NCBI RefSeq assembly: GCF_000143415.4
Contig: NW_003314649.1
Span: 1 to 7,863, forward strand
Reading direction: 5' to 3'
Length of the DNA: 7,863 nt
Source of the DNA: Selaginella moellendorffii
Taxonomy: Eukaryota > Plantae > Lycopodiophyta
Shown: in pieces, positions 1 to 7,863 of the stretch
Layout: the number at the start of each line of letters is the position of its first letter
Position numbering within the stretch: position 1 is the first letter of the stretch
The notes under the pieces: generated by a model
Told to the model about the DNA's origin: nothing
The model's input: the letters and a program-made list of their open reading frames with translations, nothing else
The model's database searches: none
Position numbers and translations under genes: made by a program

Positions 1-617
1 CTTTTGGGCACTTGTGAGTAGCAGATACCGCGTCGTGGCATTTGTATGGCATGTGCACAGGGATGTGTCTGGTGTATGTGAGGCTCTTGAACATGCGGTA
101 CACATCTAGTGCGCCCAGACATACATCAAACTCCTCCTCCTTCGGGTTCTTGATCCTTGAAGGATCGCTTGATCTTCTAGAGGGAAAGGTCCAAGCAAGG
201 AAGTAAGCCACCCTGCTCCTCAATAGTGTGGCTGGTGTGTTTGGTCGGATTTTAAAAACAACTATACTTCTAAGAGGAATTGTAATAACCACATCGTGTT
301 TGGACAGATGGGTCATGAGAAAAAACAAGATTCACTTACAAAACAATATTCCTTTCGAAATGTGAGCCCTTTCAACAATGCACAAGCAACAAAACGTCAG
401 CAAAATTCATAGCTGAGTCAGTTGCATAATGCAGCTAAGTTCTTTATAGTGAGGTTGCTCTGCAATCCTCATGGCCTTCAAAGCGGAAGCCCCAGCACTG
501 TTTTTCTCTCGCCCCAGCATTTGCCCCCAGAAAGCATAAGTTTTACAAGCAGTGCCCAGCAAATGCCGCAACCAGGTACCTGCCACCTTTCTGTTCTACG
601 AGAATGACAGGGGGGCC
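1..617 (+). repeat. ~780-bp tandem unit, type A, partial and deletion-riddled copy
   Basis: Homologous to 5699-6359 and more distantly to 618-1393. Confidence 0.9.
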
Positions 618-1393
618 TGTTATTTCCAGCTCAGGAAACGAGACAGCTACTGAGCTAAATATATCATGTGCTCCAGAGCTTCTCCTATTTCAGGCAAAAA
701 GACCACTAGACCCCACCCCATACATGTGGTGCTTTGGGGCATTTGTGAGTAGCAGATGCCGAGTGTTGGCATTTGCATGGCATGTGCACATGGATGTGTC
801 CGGTGTATGCGGGGCTCTTATTCGTTGCCGTCGCACAATACGCATCTGACACGACCCAGACACACATCAAACTCTGCCTCCTTTGGGTGCTTGATCCTTG
901 AGGGATTGCTTGATCTCCCAGAGTGCAAGGTCCAAGCAAGGAAGTACGCCATGACTGATGTATTTCTCGGTGTTGTTGGATCTTAAAAATGGCTGTGCTT
1001 TTGAGTTCCTGGCAAGGAATTGTATTCTCTTACGAATGAATCTTTGGTGTTTTTTCACAATCCATCTATCCAAACACAATGTTGTTATTGCATTTGCATA
1101 TTCCTTTCAAAAGTACAAAGAATGTGAAGCCATTTCAAGGCATCACACAACAATGTATGGGCGACAATGCGTTCAGAAAAATTCATAGCTAAGTTGGTCA
1201 CACAATGTTACCAGGAGTTCTTTATAGCTGCCTCGCTCCGCAATTCTTACTGCCTTTCAAAGCGCAAACCCCAGCACTGTTTGTCTCTCGCCCCAGCATT
1301 TGCCCCATGGGGGCATAAGTCTTACAAATATTTAGCAAATGCCGCACCGGGTGCCTACCACCTTTCTGTTGTGTGGGAATGACAAAGGGGCCC
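618..1393 (+). repeat. ~780-bp tandem unit, type B
   Basis: Begins tgttatttccag. Shares blocks with unit A (tgtgagtagcagat, catgtgcaca, aaggtccaagcaaggaagta, aaaattcatagct, ctcgccccagcatttgcccc). Followed by a ~20-bp stub of a third unit (ttgtatttccagcccaggaaa). Confidence 0.92.
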
Positions 1394-1618
1394 TTGTATT
1401 TCCAGCCCAGGAAAAAATAACTGATAAAAATTACCCGAGTTAATTTTATATTTTAAGCAAAAACATCTCTAGTAGATTTGCATCCATGGCCTGAGGACCT
1501 AGAGGCGCAAAGTCTGAAGGGTTGATCAATGAGAGTGCTCTGCGTTGTTGTGAAGATGACCGTTGAGATCTATTTTCAAATATTCTGGACTGCTTTCTTT
1601 TTTAATCTTTTCTTGCAG

Positions 1619-1984
1619 GCCGATGAAATGTAGTATGTTCTTGGGAGGATCTTGGCGGTGATGGCGTTCAAACCGGTCCTATAGGCTCAGGGCACAGGCC
1701 AGGTATGTCTCTCCACAGCCTTGATGGCAGGCACAGCTTGGATGGAATTTAGACTCTTCTGGAGAGACGTGCTAAAGCTACTAAGGTAACACGGAAGCCA
1801 CTACAGGGAAGTACCTTTCCCTTCTCTTTGTAACAGGTTGCATGCCAAGGTCGCTGGATACGTGCGTCAAGTTTATAGTGACTCTGGGAAAGGCGTGCAT
1901 GGCTTTTTATGGTCTCCCTCCCTTCAGGTAATGGCAGAAATCTGTTGGCAGAAATCTGTTTTGGGGGACTTGGGCGACAGTTAG
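1619..1984 (+). pseudogene. Possible decayed spliced gene fragment, no family recognised
   Basis: Acceptor-like ttttcttgcag at 1618 and a 51-nt GT..AG intron candidate at 1786-1836 with a polypyrimidine tract. The joined frame has only two internal TAG stops. Speculative. Confidence 0.2.
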
Positions 1985-2471
1985 AAGGTAGAAGGTGACG
2001 ACTGCCAGGCGACTAAATCAACTTTATTTTTGTGTAAACTTCGAATATACAAACAATTTTGGTCCCTGTTCCAACCAGATTAATGCTCCAATCTCGCAGC
2101 CAGTAAGTAGCCCTATCCGATCGAGATGAGGCAGAGATTGGTGTCGTGATTGGAAGGCAAGCAGGGGATGTGTTGTGCACGAGAGGTAACAAGAAAGATA
2201 AGTTCCAGAGTTTTCTTCGTAACTCTATATCATAAGTATGTTTTGAGTTAGCAACATAAGAACCTTTACTTGCCATGGTCTGCAAACCAGTCAAAAGTCC
2301 TTTCCAGTGACACACTAGTCATCTCGTGGTACGCGTAAGCTGCATTGAGCTCCTCTTGAATGTGATGCTCCCACTTCTTCAGGCTCACAGGAAAAGCATT
2401 CCTTCGCTCTAGAACAGCCCGCCAACCCACCCTCCGTCCATCGCTCCTCATGAAATCGTTCTTGTCTAGAA

Positions 2472-2840
2472 TAATAAAAATTAAAATTTTTAAATACTTA
2501 AGAAAAATTAACTTGAAATTGTTTTTATTTGTTTATATTGAAATTTTTAACATATTTAAATTTATATTATTATTTTTGTGGCACAATTTAACACTTTATA
2601 TATTCCAGAATATTTATCTTGCTTACAAAAAACATATGAATAAATTTGAAAATATATAATCAATAAATATATCCAGAAAAGTTAGAGATACATAGTCAAT
2701 TGTGTTTTATCATCTTCTCATCAAGGATTGTCCACAAAAGCTCCCTAAGGGATGAAGGTACACCTTCATCATCCATTTCCTTTGCTTTGCAGGAATGCAT
2801 TTGGATGATTGTACTATTGCCATAACACCCCATCCTAATG
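2472..2840 (+). repeat. ~370-bp imperfect direct repeat, copy downstream of the lectin gene
   Basis: Collinear with 4448-4807. Shared blocks include ttgtttatattgaaa, ttttgtggcacaatttaacactttatata, agaatatttatcttgctta, gttagagatacatag, ctaagggatga, gtacacctt, ccataacaccccat. Confidence 0.93.
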
Positions 2841-2956
2841 CTAAGACCAAGGTTAAGTTTGGAAATTTATTAACTATGAAATGGCGTTAGATGAATTTAA
2901 ATATAATAACAATATCATGACAATCTCTACCTTCCGTAAATATGCCTCACTAGTAG

Positions 2957-2973
2957 ATATATATATATATATA
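2957..2973. repeat. (AT)8 microsatellite
   Basis: atatatatatatatata read directly. Confidence 0.9.
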
Positions 2974-3464
2974 GGAAAAACTAAAGGCCTTACAATCTAA
3001 ATCAATTTTTAATAGTGTTTTCTTATCATTACATCAAAACAATTCTGCAAGGAAAAGAAAGAGTCTAAGAAATTACAAATTCAGTAACTATAAAATTATA
3101 ATTTTGAGTTTCAACTTGAAAATAAAATTCAAAGATAATTAGATTTAGAAAACATTCTCTAAAAGTTGTAAAACCAAGTAGCATAAGATCAATAAAAGGC
3201 TTATAATTCAATTTTTTTTATATTCAAGGTATTACATATAGAAATAATAAAATTAAATAATATTTAAATTAAATAAAAAATATATTATGTACATGAAAAA
3301 AATGGTTTGCTTACTAACTTAGTTACTTTAATATTTAATTTTGAACAATTACATAAACTTAATCGGTATACAATAATTGAACATTCTATTTACATATTTT
3401 CCAACTTTTTAAACAAAATAATTATAATAAGTTGTTTTATTTTACTTATTATATTCAAGATGAA

Positions 3465-3851
3465 TCAACAAAATGTATTTGAAGCCCAAATAGGATCTAT
3501 TAATGGATGAGTACTAAAATGTTTTTGATAACTTGAATATAAAACTAAATTACAATCATCTTGCATAATCAAATATGTATTTAAAAAACAATGAAGACGT
3601 TTGCAATTAGTACTAGATGCCCAAATTGCATGTTGTTTACCAGAATATAAAACTAAGTTTCCATCCTCTTGTAATCTTAAAACACAATTAAATTCATTAT
3701 TTGATGGTTTTATTGACCATAATATCTTATTGTTAGTATATAGTATCAATTCACAAAATATATTTAGATACAAGTGTGCTTTTTGATTTACAGAAATTAA
3801 GAAGTGTGTTTCTAATAAATATTGATGTGGCATATTAGGATATCCAGACAT
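3465..3851 (-). other. Bulb-type lectin (B-lectin, beta-prism II) domain, approx. aa170-297 of the CDS
   Basis: Three subdomain repeats: LNIFCELILY..ILWS, LQEDGNLVLY..IWASST, MQDDCNLVLY..IWASNT. C202 and C225 sit at the positions of the disulfide known in GNA. Domain start is approximate. Confidence 0.88.
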
Positions 3852-4358
3852 TATTATAGTTGTATATACATCACATCTTCTATTTTTCAAGTGCAAATTG
3901 GTTTTTGCATGTTGTATATGAGAGCGATAGTTTCTAATCATATATTGAAAAGCATAATTTTCAGCAACCACAGTGATATATGAAGCACCAAACTCCATCA
4001 TATCATCATAAGATTCTTCTAAAAGCCTACCTAATTCACCTCTTATAACTGATCCTCGATCTGTACCACCTGCAGCATTTACAGCACATTTTGCAAAAGA
4101 ATTCTCAATTGTACTATAAATCCAAATACTAATTGCAATAATTGTTTTTGTTCCATCATCATTTGTTAATTCTGCCTCACCATCTTGCCTTTGACCTCTT
4201 GGAATTATGGCATTAGGAATAGATGTGATCATAGCACGAATACCTCTAATAATTAAATGAACTGATTCTGAAGATAATACATCTAAATCACCTGCATCAA
4301 TTTGAAAAGGGCATACTTTTGAGACTAAAATTAATAAAAAATATATATAACACTTCAT
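3465..4358 (-). CDS. Secreted protein: signal peptide + unassigned N-terminal domain + C-terminal bulb-type (GNA-related, D-mannose-binding) lectin domain
   Basis: 297-aa uninterrupted ORF in AT-rich DNA where long ORFs are unlikely by chance. Third codon positions are strongly A/T. The N-terminus MKCYIYFLLILVSKVCP is signal-peptide-like. It has two canonical QxDxNxVxY motifs (QEDGNLVLY aa230-238, QDDCNLVLY aa266-274), each followed by IWAS(S/N)T as in Galanthus nivalis agglutinin-type lectins. Confidence 0.92.
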   Translation of the reverse strand: MKCYIYFLLILVSKVCPFQIDAGDLDVLSSESVHLIIRGIRAMITSIPNAIIPRGQRQDGEAELTNDDGTKTIIAISIWIYSTIENSFAKCAVNAAGGTDRGSVIRGELGRLLEESYDDMMEFGASYITVVAENYAFQYMIRNYRSHIQHAKTNLHLKNRRCDVYTTIIMSGYPNMPHQYLLETHFLISVNQKAHLYLNIFCELILYTNNKILWSIKPSNNEFNCVLRLQEDGNLVLYSGKQHAIWASSTNCKRLHCFLNTYLIMQDDCNLVLYSSYQKHFSTHPLIDPIWASNTFC

Positions 4359-4447
4359 TTTAAGTTTTTAATTTAGCTATGATTATCCTATTTATCTAAC
4401 ATTAAATATTATTATTACGCTTACTAAAATTTAAAAAATTATAATAT

Positions 4448-4807
4448 TAATAAAATTTAAAATTTTTAATTACTTAACAAAAACTTAACTTGAAATTTTT
4501 TTAATTTGTTTATATTGAAAAATTTAATATATTTAAAGTTATATTATTATTTTGTGGCACAATTTAACACTTTATATAATCTAGAATATTTATCTTGCTT
4601 ATACAAAAGACCTATGAATAAATTTGAAAACATATAAGTAATAAATATATTCAGAAGAGTTAGAGATACATAGCCAATTATGTTTTGTCTCATCAAGAAT
4701 TGTTCACGAAAGCTCTCTAAGGGATGAGTGTACACCTTGTATAAAAACCTGCAAAGTGCTCACCATTTTGATGTTCCACTCTACTACCATAACACCCCAT
4801 ACTTATG
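4448..4807 (+). repeat. ~370-bp imperfect direct repeat, copy ~90 bp upstream of the lectin ATG (probable promoter region)
   Basis: Collinear with 2472-2840. Promoter role is inferred only from position. Confidence 0.9.
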
Positions 4808-5245
4808 TAATTCACATTGTGCCACTGCCGAAATTTAACATCATCACTAAAAAATTCTCAATCCATGAGACTTTGAGCATTTTTTTCTATTTGCTTCCAC
4901 TAATATGGCATTTATACAAGATTCCATATAGAAATAACTTTGTGGTCTCAAGTAAGCTCACTCTATTGTTTTTAAGTACATACCTTTGTCTTACCCATTC
5001 CTCAGGAGTTGATTGCATACCAAAATGCCTATATTATATCAAAGATATTTGAAGTGCAAAATGAAAAAATTGAGAGATATATCCCAAATGTATATCACTT
5101 AAAATACCACATGAAATAAAGTTCTTTAAGCTGTTTTTCAAACAAATTCATTCATGCTTTTGGTCTTCTCTTGCAACAAATCATCTTTGAGCTTTAAACT
5201 CTGTGATGATGAAATCCTTGAATGGAAGTTACTCTCTGGCAAACA

Positions 5246-5297
5246 AAAAGGGTGGGCAAGTTTGGTTTTCACACCTATTGGACTTACCCACCCTCTT
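5246..5297 (+). other. Imperfect inverted repeat, ~21-bp stem-loop
   Basis: aaaagggtgggcaagtttggt / 10-nt loop / attggacttacccaccctctt gives 15 Watson-Crick pairs, 4 G-U pairs and 2 mismatches on the plus strand. Confidence 0.6.
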
Positions 5298-5580
5298 GTC
5301 CCCCATCTTAGGCCTTGCAAGGGGTCAGCAAGTGTGGTTCATGCATGTACCAAAATTGCCGTGCCTCCTCTTGCCTGATGGGGTGGCCATTGTTTCCGTG
5401 ATGTGCCCTCTGCAGAGTTGGACAAAGAAAAGGATATAACAAAAGAAAACAAACAAGAAAACCAGCTATCTCAACAATTACCTTTGGCACCATTGTCAAG
5501 ATCTCAGCACTCTCTGTCAGTGTGGTGAACATCCCTTGGTGCTCTCTCCTTTTTCTCTCAACATGGATGACACTCTCTCC

Positions 5581-6359
5581 TGTTATTTCCAGGCTATGAA
5601 ACTAAATAGCTACCAAGCTAAACACATCATGTGCTCCCAAGCTTCTCCCATGTCCAGTAAGAAGAAGTTTATGCCCACCAAACCCCATGCATGTGGTGCT
5701 TTTGGGCTTTTGTGAGTAGCAGATACCGCATGGTGGCATTTGTATGGCATGTGCACATGGATGTGTCTGGTGTATGTGAGGCTCTTGTTTGCCGGCAACG
5801 TGCGGCACACATCTAGTGTGACCCAGACATACATCAAACTCCTCCTCCTTTGGGTTCTTGATCCTTGAAGGATTGTTTGATCTCCTAGAGGGCAAGGTCC
5901 AAGCAAGGAAGTAAGCCACCTTGCTCCTCAATAGTGTGGCTGGTGTGTTTCTTGACGTGGTCGGATCTTAAAAACAGCTGTACTTCTAAGTTCCTGGTGA
6001 GGAATTGTATGGAAACGCAATAACCACATCGTGTTTGGACAGATGGGTCATGAGAAAAACCAAGATTCACTCGCAAAACAATATTCCTTTCAAAAGTACC
6101 AAGAAATGTGAGGCCCTTTCAGGGCATCACACAAGAATGCATAGGCAACAAAACGTTCAGCAAAATTCATAGCTGAGTCAGTTGCATAAGTCGAGGTTGC
6201 TCTGCAATCCTCATGGCCTTCAAAGCGCAAGCCCCAGCACTGTTTGTCTCTCGCCCCAGCATTTGCCCCGAGAAGGCACAAGTTTTACAAACAGTGCCCA
6301 GCAAATACCGCAACCAGGTACCTGCCACCTTTCTGTTCCACGAGAATGACAGGGGGGCC
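5581..6359 (+). repeat. ~780-bp tandem unit, type A, full copy
   Basis: Begins tgttatttccaggct and is collinear with the adjacent unit 6360-7135. Confidence 0.92.
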
Positions 6360-7135
6360 TGTTATTTCCAGCTCAGGAAACGAGACAGCTACTGAGCTAA
6401 ATATATCATGTGCTCCAGAGCTTCTCCTATTTCAGGCAAAAAGACCACTAGACCCCACCCCATACATGTGGTGCTTTGGGGCATTTGTGAGTAGCAGATG
6501 CCGAGTGTTGGCATTTGCATGGCATGTGCACATGGATGTGTCCGGTGTATGCGAGGCTCTTATTCGTTGCCGTCGAACAATACGCATCTGACACGACCCA
6601 GACACACATCAAACTCTGCCTCCTTTGGGTGCTTGATCCTTGAGGGATTGCTTGATCTCCCAGAGTGCAAGGTCCAAGCAAGGAAGTACGCCATGACTGA
6701 TGTATTTCTCGGTGTTGTTGGATCTTAAAAATGGCTGTGCTTTTGAGTTCCTGGCAAGGAATTGTATTCTCTTACGAATGAATCTTTGGTGTTTTTTCAC
6801 AATCCATCTATCCAAACACAATGTTGTTATTGCATTTGCATATTCCTTTCAAAAGTACAAAGAATGTGAAGCCATTTCAAGGCATCACACAACAATGTAT
6901 GGGCGACAATGCGTTCAGAAAAATTCATAGCTAAGTTGGTCACACAATGTTACCAGGAGTTCTTTATAGCTGCCTCGCTCCGCAATTCTTACTGCCTTTC
7001 AAAGCGCAAACCCCAGCACTGTTTGTCTCTCGCCCCAGCATTTGCCCCATGGGGGCATAAGTCTTACAAATATTTAGCAAATGCCGCACCGGGTGCCTAC
7101 CACCTTTCTGTTGTGTGGGAATGACAAAGGGGCCC
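6360..7135 (+). repeat. ~780-bp tandem unit, type B
   Basis: Nearly identical to 618-1393 (two substitutions seen). Confidence 0.92.
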
Positions 7136-7587
7136 TTGTATTTCCAGCCCAGGAAAAAATAACTGATAAAAATTACCCGAGTTAATTTTATATTTTAAGC
7201 AAAAACATCTCTAGTAGATTTGCATCCATGGCCTGAGGACCTAGAGGCGCAAAGTCTGAAGGGTTGATCAATGAGAGTGCTCTGCGTTGTTGTGAAGATG
7301 ACCGTTGAGTTCTATTTTCAAATATTCTGGACTGCTTTATTTTTTCGATGAAATGTAGTATGTTCCTGGGAGGATCTTGGCGGTGATGGCGTTCAAACCG
7401 GTCCTATAGGCTCAGGGCACAGGCCAGGTATGTCTCTCCACAGCCTTGATGGCAGGCACAGCTTGGATGGAATTTAGACTTCCGGAGAGATTCCAAAATC
7501 ATAGAGACGTGCTAAAGCTACTAAGGTAACACGGAAGCTACTACAAGGAAGAAGAGATGGAATTCTCTTTGTAACAGGTTGTTGGAT

Positions 7588-7681
7588 CGTCACCTTCTAC
7601 CTTCTAACTGTCGCCCAAGTCCGAGGGAGACCATAAAAAGCCATGCACACCTTTCCCAGAGTCACTATAAAATTGACGCAC
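7588..7681 (-). other. Segment inverted relative to 1862-2000 of the left repeat copy
   Basis: 7588-7622 is the reverse complement of 1966-2000. 7623-7681 is the reverse complement of 1862-1920 with two mismatches. Confidence 0.95.
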
Positions 7682-7863
7682 ATCCTTCCTTCTCTTCTCG
7701 ACTGCCAGGCAATTAAATCAACTTTATTTTTGGGTAAACTTTGAATATACAAACACTTTTGGTCCCTGTTCCAACCAGATTAACGCTCCAATCTCACAGC
7801 CACCTATCCGATTGAGATGAGGCAGAGATTAATGTTGTGATTGGAAGGCAAGCAAGGGATGTG

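Follow-up and report, generated by a model that had tools for sequence, protein, structure and literature searches.

The 7,863-nucleotide stretch of Selaginella moellendorffii DNA described here (contig NW_003314649.1, positions 1 to 7,863; hereafter the window) carries a single long gene on its reverse strand. The predicted product is a secretory protein that joins an N-terminal domain of no recognised family to a C-terminal lectin of the GNA type (B_lectin). In the reading we favour, at somewhat better than even probability, the protein is a lineage-specific secreted chimerolectin in which the conserved lectin provides docking on glycans of the mannose type and a fast-evolving N-domain is stapled to it by a disulfide between C91 and C162. 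The product would enter the secretory pathway by way of its signal peptide. It would consist of three parts: an acidic N-domain of about 125 amino acids (aa), partly amphipathic-helical as judged from periodicity, a basic and variable linker of about 25 aa, and a C-terminal lectin similar to monomeric gastrodianin. The lectin would serve as the docking module and the rapidly diverging N-domain, held by C91-C162, as the variable working module. Cleavage of the linker may occur, and would not be a conserved requirement.

The initial annotation of this DNA had reported the signal peptide, the acidic domain, the basic linker ending in KNRR, C162 and the bulb-type lectin, all of which are present. 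It had gone on to propose that the linker is cut to give a two-chain toxin. Four further intact open reading frames (ORFs) with the same three-part architecture now allow the layout and the proposal to be considered apart.

The gene and its paralogs

The gene is a single ORF that runs from ATG to TGA, encodes 297 aa and is the only long ORF of the window. It lies in a setting of 19-29% GC in which stop codons are dense. Within the AT-rich region 2451-5100 the longest run of codons without a stop is 300; 500 shuffles never gave more than 129, with a mean of 72. The N-terminus is basic and then hydrophobic in all paralogs despite their diverged sequence, and the signal peptide is called from hydrophobicity and this comparison only. 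No transmembrane segment follows it.

The public model for the window (3537-3761, label P0082) is a 75-aa fragment that covers only the lectin core. Every member of the family is likewise annotated as a 'partial' hypothetical protein of 75-94 aa (EFJ13259.1, EFJ06242.1, EFJ32922.1, EFJ07088.1 and EFJ05932.1), and the true ORFs behind these models are 295-304 codons long. No database record was found for the exact 297-aa protein, and Rfam and tRNA scans of the window gave no matches. The gene is an intronless, under-annotated nuclear gene of this lycophyte.

The paralogous loci were found through a search with the lectin domain only, and their DNA (assembly GCA_000143415.2) was re-read for ORFs. 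The search returned the window's own 75-aa product, recorded on a 7863-bp contig of which the window is thus the whole, and three 'partial' S. moellendorffii hypothetical proteins with 55-60% identity; two further 'partial' proteins of the species were added by cluster look-up. A word search with the whole protein returned 80 proteins, all of which matched the lectin part only. The family has at least four loci, at which five intact ORFs, that of the window included, were seen. Besides the window, the family is found on GL377634.1, GL377704.1, GL377571.1 and GL377711.1/GL377689.1. The loci have ordinary plant genes as neighbours, on scaffolds that reach 4 Mb, and are present in both haplotypes, so these are integrated plant genes and not contamination. 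Loci L003 and L005 are haplotype partners and have TPR, PsbO-type and ubiquitin genes as common neighbours. Positions 3279-7863 of the window are colinear with L004 at 92%.

The alignment of the five ORFs contains 79 invariant columns, among them all eight Cys of the mature protein (91, 162, 202, 225, 252, 257, 269 and 297). These are the eight that the initial annotation had listed. It had overlooked C3 and C16, which lie inside the hydrophobic N-terminus and are not conserved in the paralogs.

Lectin, proposed staple and orphan domain

The C-terminal domain is certainly a member of the GNA/B_lectin family. Pfam PF01453 (B_lectin) is the sole Pfam domain in the protein; its score is 38.9 bits for the full-length protein and 44.5 bits for the isolated domain (curated cut-off 32.4). 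The best sequence match in the PDB is gastrodianin-4 (1xd6, E 6.6e-18), followed by GNA and its kin. An AlphaFold2 (AF2) model of aa 141-297, built with a 41-sequence alignment, has predicted local confidence (pLDDT) values mostly of 82-94 from about aa 181 on, with one block of ten residues at 74. Foldseek comparison of the lectin model with the PDB ranks gastrodianin first (1xd6, TMt 0.81), then a Marasmius lectin, pyocin L1, garlic lectin and GNA. Two of the three QxDxNxVxY sugar-site motifs are intact in the window protein, which points to mannose binding by the domain. The similarity to gastrodianin/GAFP (1xd5, 1xd6) extends to these motifs and to a pair of Cys (C202 and C225). However, gastrodianin is lectin-only and about 110 aa long, whereas the Selaginella protein has in addition an N-terminal extension of 160 aa, four further lectin Cys and a C-x4-C insert.

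The pairing of the cysteines can be proposed in part from these comparisons. C202 and C225 are aligned with the gastrodianin Cys pair, which forms the canonical GNA disulfide, and they would form that bond here. C269 occupies the motif position that matches C202's, so by pseudo-threefold symmetry its expected partner is the C-terminal C297. C252 and C257 probably close a small loop in the family-specific insert. With the six lectin Cys assigned by homology, pseudo-symmetry and the insert, C91 and C162 are the left-over pair, and they probably form an inter-domain staple that holds the N-domain on the lectin.

The N-domain is acidic (18 D/E against 9 K/R in aa 18-140) and is 29-38% identical to its counterparts in the distant paralogs. 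Its length is conserved. The N-terminal part of the protein (N-part) has 23 invariant positions, including C91, an I-x3-I-x3-I-x2-I-P run, R106 and R142. Across the alignment, the periodicity of the hydrophobic moment is suggestive of amphipathic helices near aa 33-52, 107-124 and 140-146; AF2 run on the whole protein without an alignment gave a pLDDT of 31. The five-ORF alignment shows no catalytic motif and no invariant His in the N-domain; two acidic columns are conserved and two Arg are invariant. With no more than these acidic columns and no conserved His there is no recognisable catalytic set. The initial annotation is borne out in that the domain belongs to no recognised family.

Searches for relatives of the N-domain covered a wide range of collections. 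A word search with the N-part alone gave no match. Pfam gave none on the N-domain even at E<=10, and Pfam, NCBIfam and PHROGs gave no significant match on any of the five N-domains. A PDB profile search returned only chance-level matches (E 0.26-0.7, to a viral envelope glycoprotein). The whole protein matched nothing among viral, prokaryote-genome and metagenome contigs, and the N-domain alignment found no relative among viral contigs. HMMER with aa 18-165 against 1.84 billion cluster representatives returned a lone match (E 3.1e-4), to a bacterial protein of 3371 aa that carries four LamG_3 repeats. This match is attributed to chance because its score adds up four identical repeats, none of which exceeds 9.3 bits singly, and because only 2.0 bits are left when the family profile is used and no match at all with a paralog-only profile.

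Fusions of this kind are well known in bacteria and plants, so the kind of protein is not itself new. Matches of the word search include many fusions of B_lectin to a partner domain (CHAP, LysM, M23, astacin and hevein-type Pfam accessions). Bacterial B_lectin fusions, and the lectin-like bacteriocins LlpA and pyocin L1, the latter among the fold matches above, likewise use the B_lectin as a targeting module beside another domain. In these the neighbours are known enzyme or wall-binding domains, or the lectins stand in tandem, whereas the plant protein described here has one lectin and an orphan domain. Two Gigaspora margarita proteins (labels P0060 and P0063) also have an N-terminal region ahead of a C-terminal B_lectin, in P0060 without a second recorded Pfam domain; comparison of both with the N-domain by phmmer and BLASTP found no similarity.

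Plant GNA chimeras with glycoside hydrolase, M11 peptidase, EGF and S-locus/PAN/kinase domains have been described (PMC6362431). They too combine a GNA domain and an unrelated module in one secretory-pathway polypeptide, but in the Selaginella protein the partner matches no known domain and stands N-terminal to the lectin. The view that classic GNA lectins are lectin-only, from which the initial annotation had started, is too narrow in light of the bacterial fusions and of these plant chimeras (PMC6362431). In S-domain (G-type) lectin receptor kinases the lectin is N-terminal and is followed by S-locus, PAN and kinase domains; here the lectin is C-terminal and Pfam finds none of those domains. 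The partner domain and the proposed Cys-stapled layout are new as far as the searched databases show.

Selection and alternative readings

Selection was measured as the ratio of nonsynonymous to synonymous substitution rates (dN/dS) by the method of Nei and Gojobori. The neutral range was simulated under the composition of the AT-rich islands in which the genes lie, with only stops forbidden, because extreme AT bias can distort this method. Neutral change is expected to give a ratio of 1.0-1.1 in the simulation (5-95% range 0.74-1.8). The lectin has dN/dS of 0.19-0.54, under the neutral 5% bound of 0.74, and is thus clearly constrained: it is under purifying selection. The N-part changes about twice as fast. 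Some 6% of random substitutions would introduce a stop into these sequences, so that between the N-parts of distant paralogs 12-18 such substitutions are expected in the absence of constraint. None was seen (P 1e-6 to 1e-8). For a nucleotide divergence of 43-45% the expected number is 17-18, and P is about 1e-8. The N-part is therefore a real coding region, kept open by selection, and its Cys is retained while most of its residues change.

A role of the chimerolectin in lectin-targeted recognition or defence may be proposed from the protein's signal for secretion, its resemblance to the Gastrodia lectin and the evolutionary pattern. The nearest characterised lectin is that of Gastrodia elata, which is named 'antifungal protein GAFP-1' in the 1xd5 entry.

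Several observations weigh against the stapled-chimerolectin reading. The dN/dS of the N-domain is 0.7-1.0, and about 2 in comparisons with L002, which is inside or above the neutral range and indicates that constraint at the level of residues is weak. The copy at L003 has one in-frame stop in its N-part; it aligns over its full length and in one frame with the intact L005 (L003 5428-6303 with L005 5467-6354), and the remainder of L003 is open for 177 codons. The proposed bond between C91 and C162 rests on a parity argument and on invariance, and AF2 assigns pLDDT below 50 to aa 141-177, a span that includes the linker and C162. The public models are homology-derived partial fragments. The family genes lie inside CpG-depleted AT islands, which could mean silencing. 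The defence role is drawn by analogy only.

Among the alternatives is the two-chain toxin of the initial annotation, in which a cut in the basic linker would release a toxic effector A chain that stays joined to a lectin B chain through C91-C162, in the manner of ricin or the yeast killer toxins. C91 and C162 are invariant as this predicts, and the linker is basic (six K/R and three H against one D/E in aa 141-165, with KNRR at 158-161), variable and modelled as disordered. The order of signal peptide, effector-side domain, linker and lectin is that of ricin, a type 2 ribosome-inactivating protein (RIP). In ricin the binding part carries its Cys directly at its N-terminal edge, and the candidate inter-domain disulfide here likewise involves a Cys at the very beginning of the lectin part. 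The processing site fares less well. RR is found somewhere in the linker of four of the five ORFs, yet it abuts the linker Cys only in the window and in its 93% identical twin at L004. It lies 11 residues further upstream in L001 and L005, and the longer linker of L002 is free of dibasic pairs. The lectin of the window protein itself contains another such pair (KR253-254), and two pairs are what chance predicts (about 2.1 from some 25 K/R in 297 residues), so RR alone carries no weight. Moreover, the processing of plant two-chain lectins usually takes place after Asn and not at sites of the Kex2 type.

The effector side of the toxin model was also examined. Pfam finds no RIP A chain on the N-domain (E<=10) or in any paralog, the PDB profile search gave nothing significant, and neither another catalytic domain or motif nor an invariant His is present. 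The lectin is a beta-prism II fold and not the trefoil of ricin B. With the killer toxins K1 and K28 only the idea of a dibasic cut and two disulfide-linked chains is common: there is no relationship of sequence, fold or host, no such protein was returned in the searches, and the dibasic site is not conserved here. That analogy also brings the logic of a yeast protease to a plant nuclear gene. Defining features of these systems were looked for and found absent, and the protein is therefore not a type 2 RIP, a killer toxin, an LlpA-type tandem lectin or an S-domain receptor kinase. What remains of the toxin model is the Cys pair and the flexible basic linker; a specific processing site, the protease logic and catalytic evidence do not. 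Processing of this sort, as judged from the compared sequences, does not appear to be a feature of the family and is unproven, and we consider the toxin model unlikely. A bolder form, in which the family would be lycophyte-specific two-chain lectin effectors housed in AT-rich islands, with a new, rapidly evolving effector fold stapled by C91-C162 to a mannose-binding GNA lectin and released by cleavage of the linker, seems rather improbable.

The N-part could instead be a large propeptide or folding aid, removed to leave a plain GNA-type lectin of about 15 kDa like gastrodianin. GNA-family lectins are commonly made as pre-pro-proteins, the faster evolution of the N-part would fit a discarded segment, and the annotators saw only the lectin. 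Removal would leave C162 unpaired on the lectin, though, and the N-part has its 23 invariant positions including C91, a conserved length and strong selection against stops; we regard this reading as quite improbable. Decidedly improbable, in our view, is that the genes are silenced or decaying copies of foreign AT-rich DNA, horizontally acquired or borne by an element, with no present function in the plant. The copies have 25-29% GC, and GC at third codon positions (GC3) is 12-15% in all five ORFs, against flanks of 37-53% GC. All family members lie in AT-rich islands of 1.2-2.0 kb that hug the ORF, with 25-28% GC and an observed/expected CpG ratio of 0.09-0.36. The stop in the L003 allele, the N-domain dN/dS near 1 and the lack of a relative of the N-domain in any other organism (1.84 billion representatives) point the same way. 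Decay is nevertheless hard to reconcile with five ORFs of 295-304 codons that stay intact at 43-45% nucleotide divergence, in a composition in which about 6% of substitutions make a stop, or with purifying selection on the lectin. No donor lineage was identified for the islands, the best characterised lectin match is a plant lectin, viral-contig scans gave no viral relatives, and no terminal inverted or long terminal repeats were found at the island edges. NCLDV-like genes (of nucleocytoplasmic large DNA viruses) have been reported in Selaginella (PMC4083422), and no connection to them was found.

It is barely credible that the N-domain is a degenerate second lectin, in a tandem B-lectin like LlpA or the two-domain plant GNA precursors, or a ConA-like/LamG sandwich. 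It is similar in size to the lectin domain, and its sole database match is the LamG_3 protein described above; the loss of that match with family profiles speaks against the sandwich. As for a cryptic lectin, hhalign of the N-domain against the lectin profile gave a probability of 0.1%, below the 0.2% of a reversed-sequence control.

Genomic setting and significance

Coordinates of the features are collected in the table. The gene is bracketed by two direct repeat copies, the similarity of which runs on more weakly for about 80 bases; L004 has the upstream copy only. A DNA pattern from the flank repeats had no match among metagenome contigs. On a larger scale the window exceeds one unit of a direct repeat of about 5.7 kb (1-2172 against 5699-7863, 92% identity), which holds subrepeats of about 775 bp with 45-50% GC and no coding signal. 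ORFs in the flanks of the gene, those in this repeat included, have no significant Pfam match. At L004 the 5.7-kb block is single and lies upstream of the gene, so the small scaffold of the window is either a variant haplotig assembly or the product of a local duplication. A short segment has opposite orientations in the two repeat copies (1862-2001 against 7587-7681, with 59-nt arms that are 97% complementary and a 36-nt exact match).

Other observations concern the neighbourhood of the paralogs. Downstream of the gene at L004 there is an assembly gap with CT/GT microsatellites (10972-11439), and further along (15070-15573) an ORF that resembles the reverse transcriptase of a plant retrotransposon, as read from its translation with no family scan. 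At L005 near-perfect tandem repeats of about 270 bp lie directly downstream of the lectin gene (6356-6899).

Table. Features of the window and its paralogous loci (window coordinates unless a locus is named)
Feature	Location	Strand	Remarks
Single-exon coding sequence, chimerolectin precursor, 297 aa and TGA stop	3465..4358	-	Same start/stop layout in the other four intact ORFs of the family
Predicted signal peptide, about aa 1-17, cleavage point approximate	4308..4358	-	Hydrophobic core aa 6-13
Orphan acidic N-domain, aa 18-140, with invariant C91	3939..4307	-	Isoelectric point (pI) 4.36
Codon of C91	4086..4088	-	Invariant in 5/5 ORFs
Basic variable linker, aa 141-165, ending KNRR-C162	3864..3938	-	21-32% identity to distant paralogs
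RR160-161, proposed dibasic processing site	3876..3881	-	Position not conserved across family
Codon of C162	3873..3875	-	Invariant in 5/5 ORFs
GNA-type (B_lectin, beta-prism II) domain, aa 166-297, six invariant Cys	3468..3863	-	Pfam, AF2, Foldseek
Degenerate first sugar-site motif, aa 199-207	3738..3764	-	Q, D and N all replaced in window; Q missing in all paralogs
Intact QxDxNxVxY, aa 230-238	3645..3671	-	Invariant in family
Intact QxDxNxVxY, aa 266-274	3537..3563	-	Conserved in all five ORFs
C252-x4-C257 loop within insertion peculiar to family relative to other B-lectins	3588..3605	-	Insert of 4-5 residues
AT-rich CpG-depleted island round gene	2765..4808	.	GC 25%, CpG observed/expected 0.28; flanks about 43% GC
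Direct repeat copy A, 295 bp	2472..2766	+	88% identical to 4448-4738
Direct repeat copy A', 5' flank of gene	4448..4738	+	With copy A brackets gene
Paralog L004 ORF	L004:9398-10288		93% identical to window protein
Paralog L001 ORF	L001:5449-6333		42-43% identical to window protein
Paralog L005 ORF	L005:5467-6351		42-43% identical to window protein
Paralog L002 ORF	L002:5389-6300		42-43% identical to window protein
Islands of the family	window 2765-4808; L004 8998-10591; L001 5199-6436; L005 5117-6954; L003 5128-6903; L002 5239-6453		

The islands may go back to foreign DNA, to decay driven by methylation or to some other cause. A GC3 of about 13% within a region of about 45% GC is a compositional oddity that bears on the origin of the genes or on their epigenetic history in an early vascular plant.

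For the family itself the immediate consequence is a corrected annotation, in which five 'partial' models of 75-94 aa become two-domain secretory proteins of 295-304 aa. The invariant C91 and C162 offer a concrete and checkable structural hypothesis. If the two-chain effector reading were true, it would describe a plant AB-type defence protein assembled from parts unrelated to ricin. Whatever its function, the N-domain adds a new partner domain to the GNA chimerolectin repertoire, one without a detectable relative among about 15 billion predicted proteins. Its open frame with near-neutral turnover of residues is a pattern common in secreted proteins that engage with other organisms, at the interfaces between hosts and their enemies.

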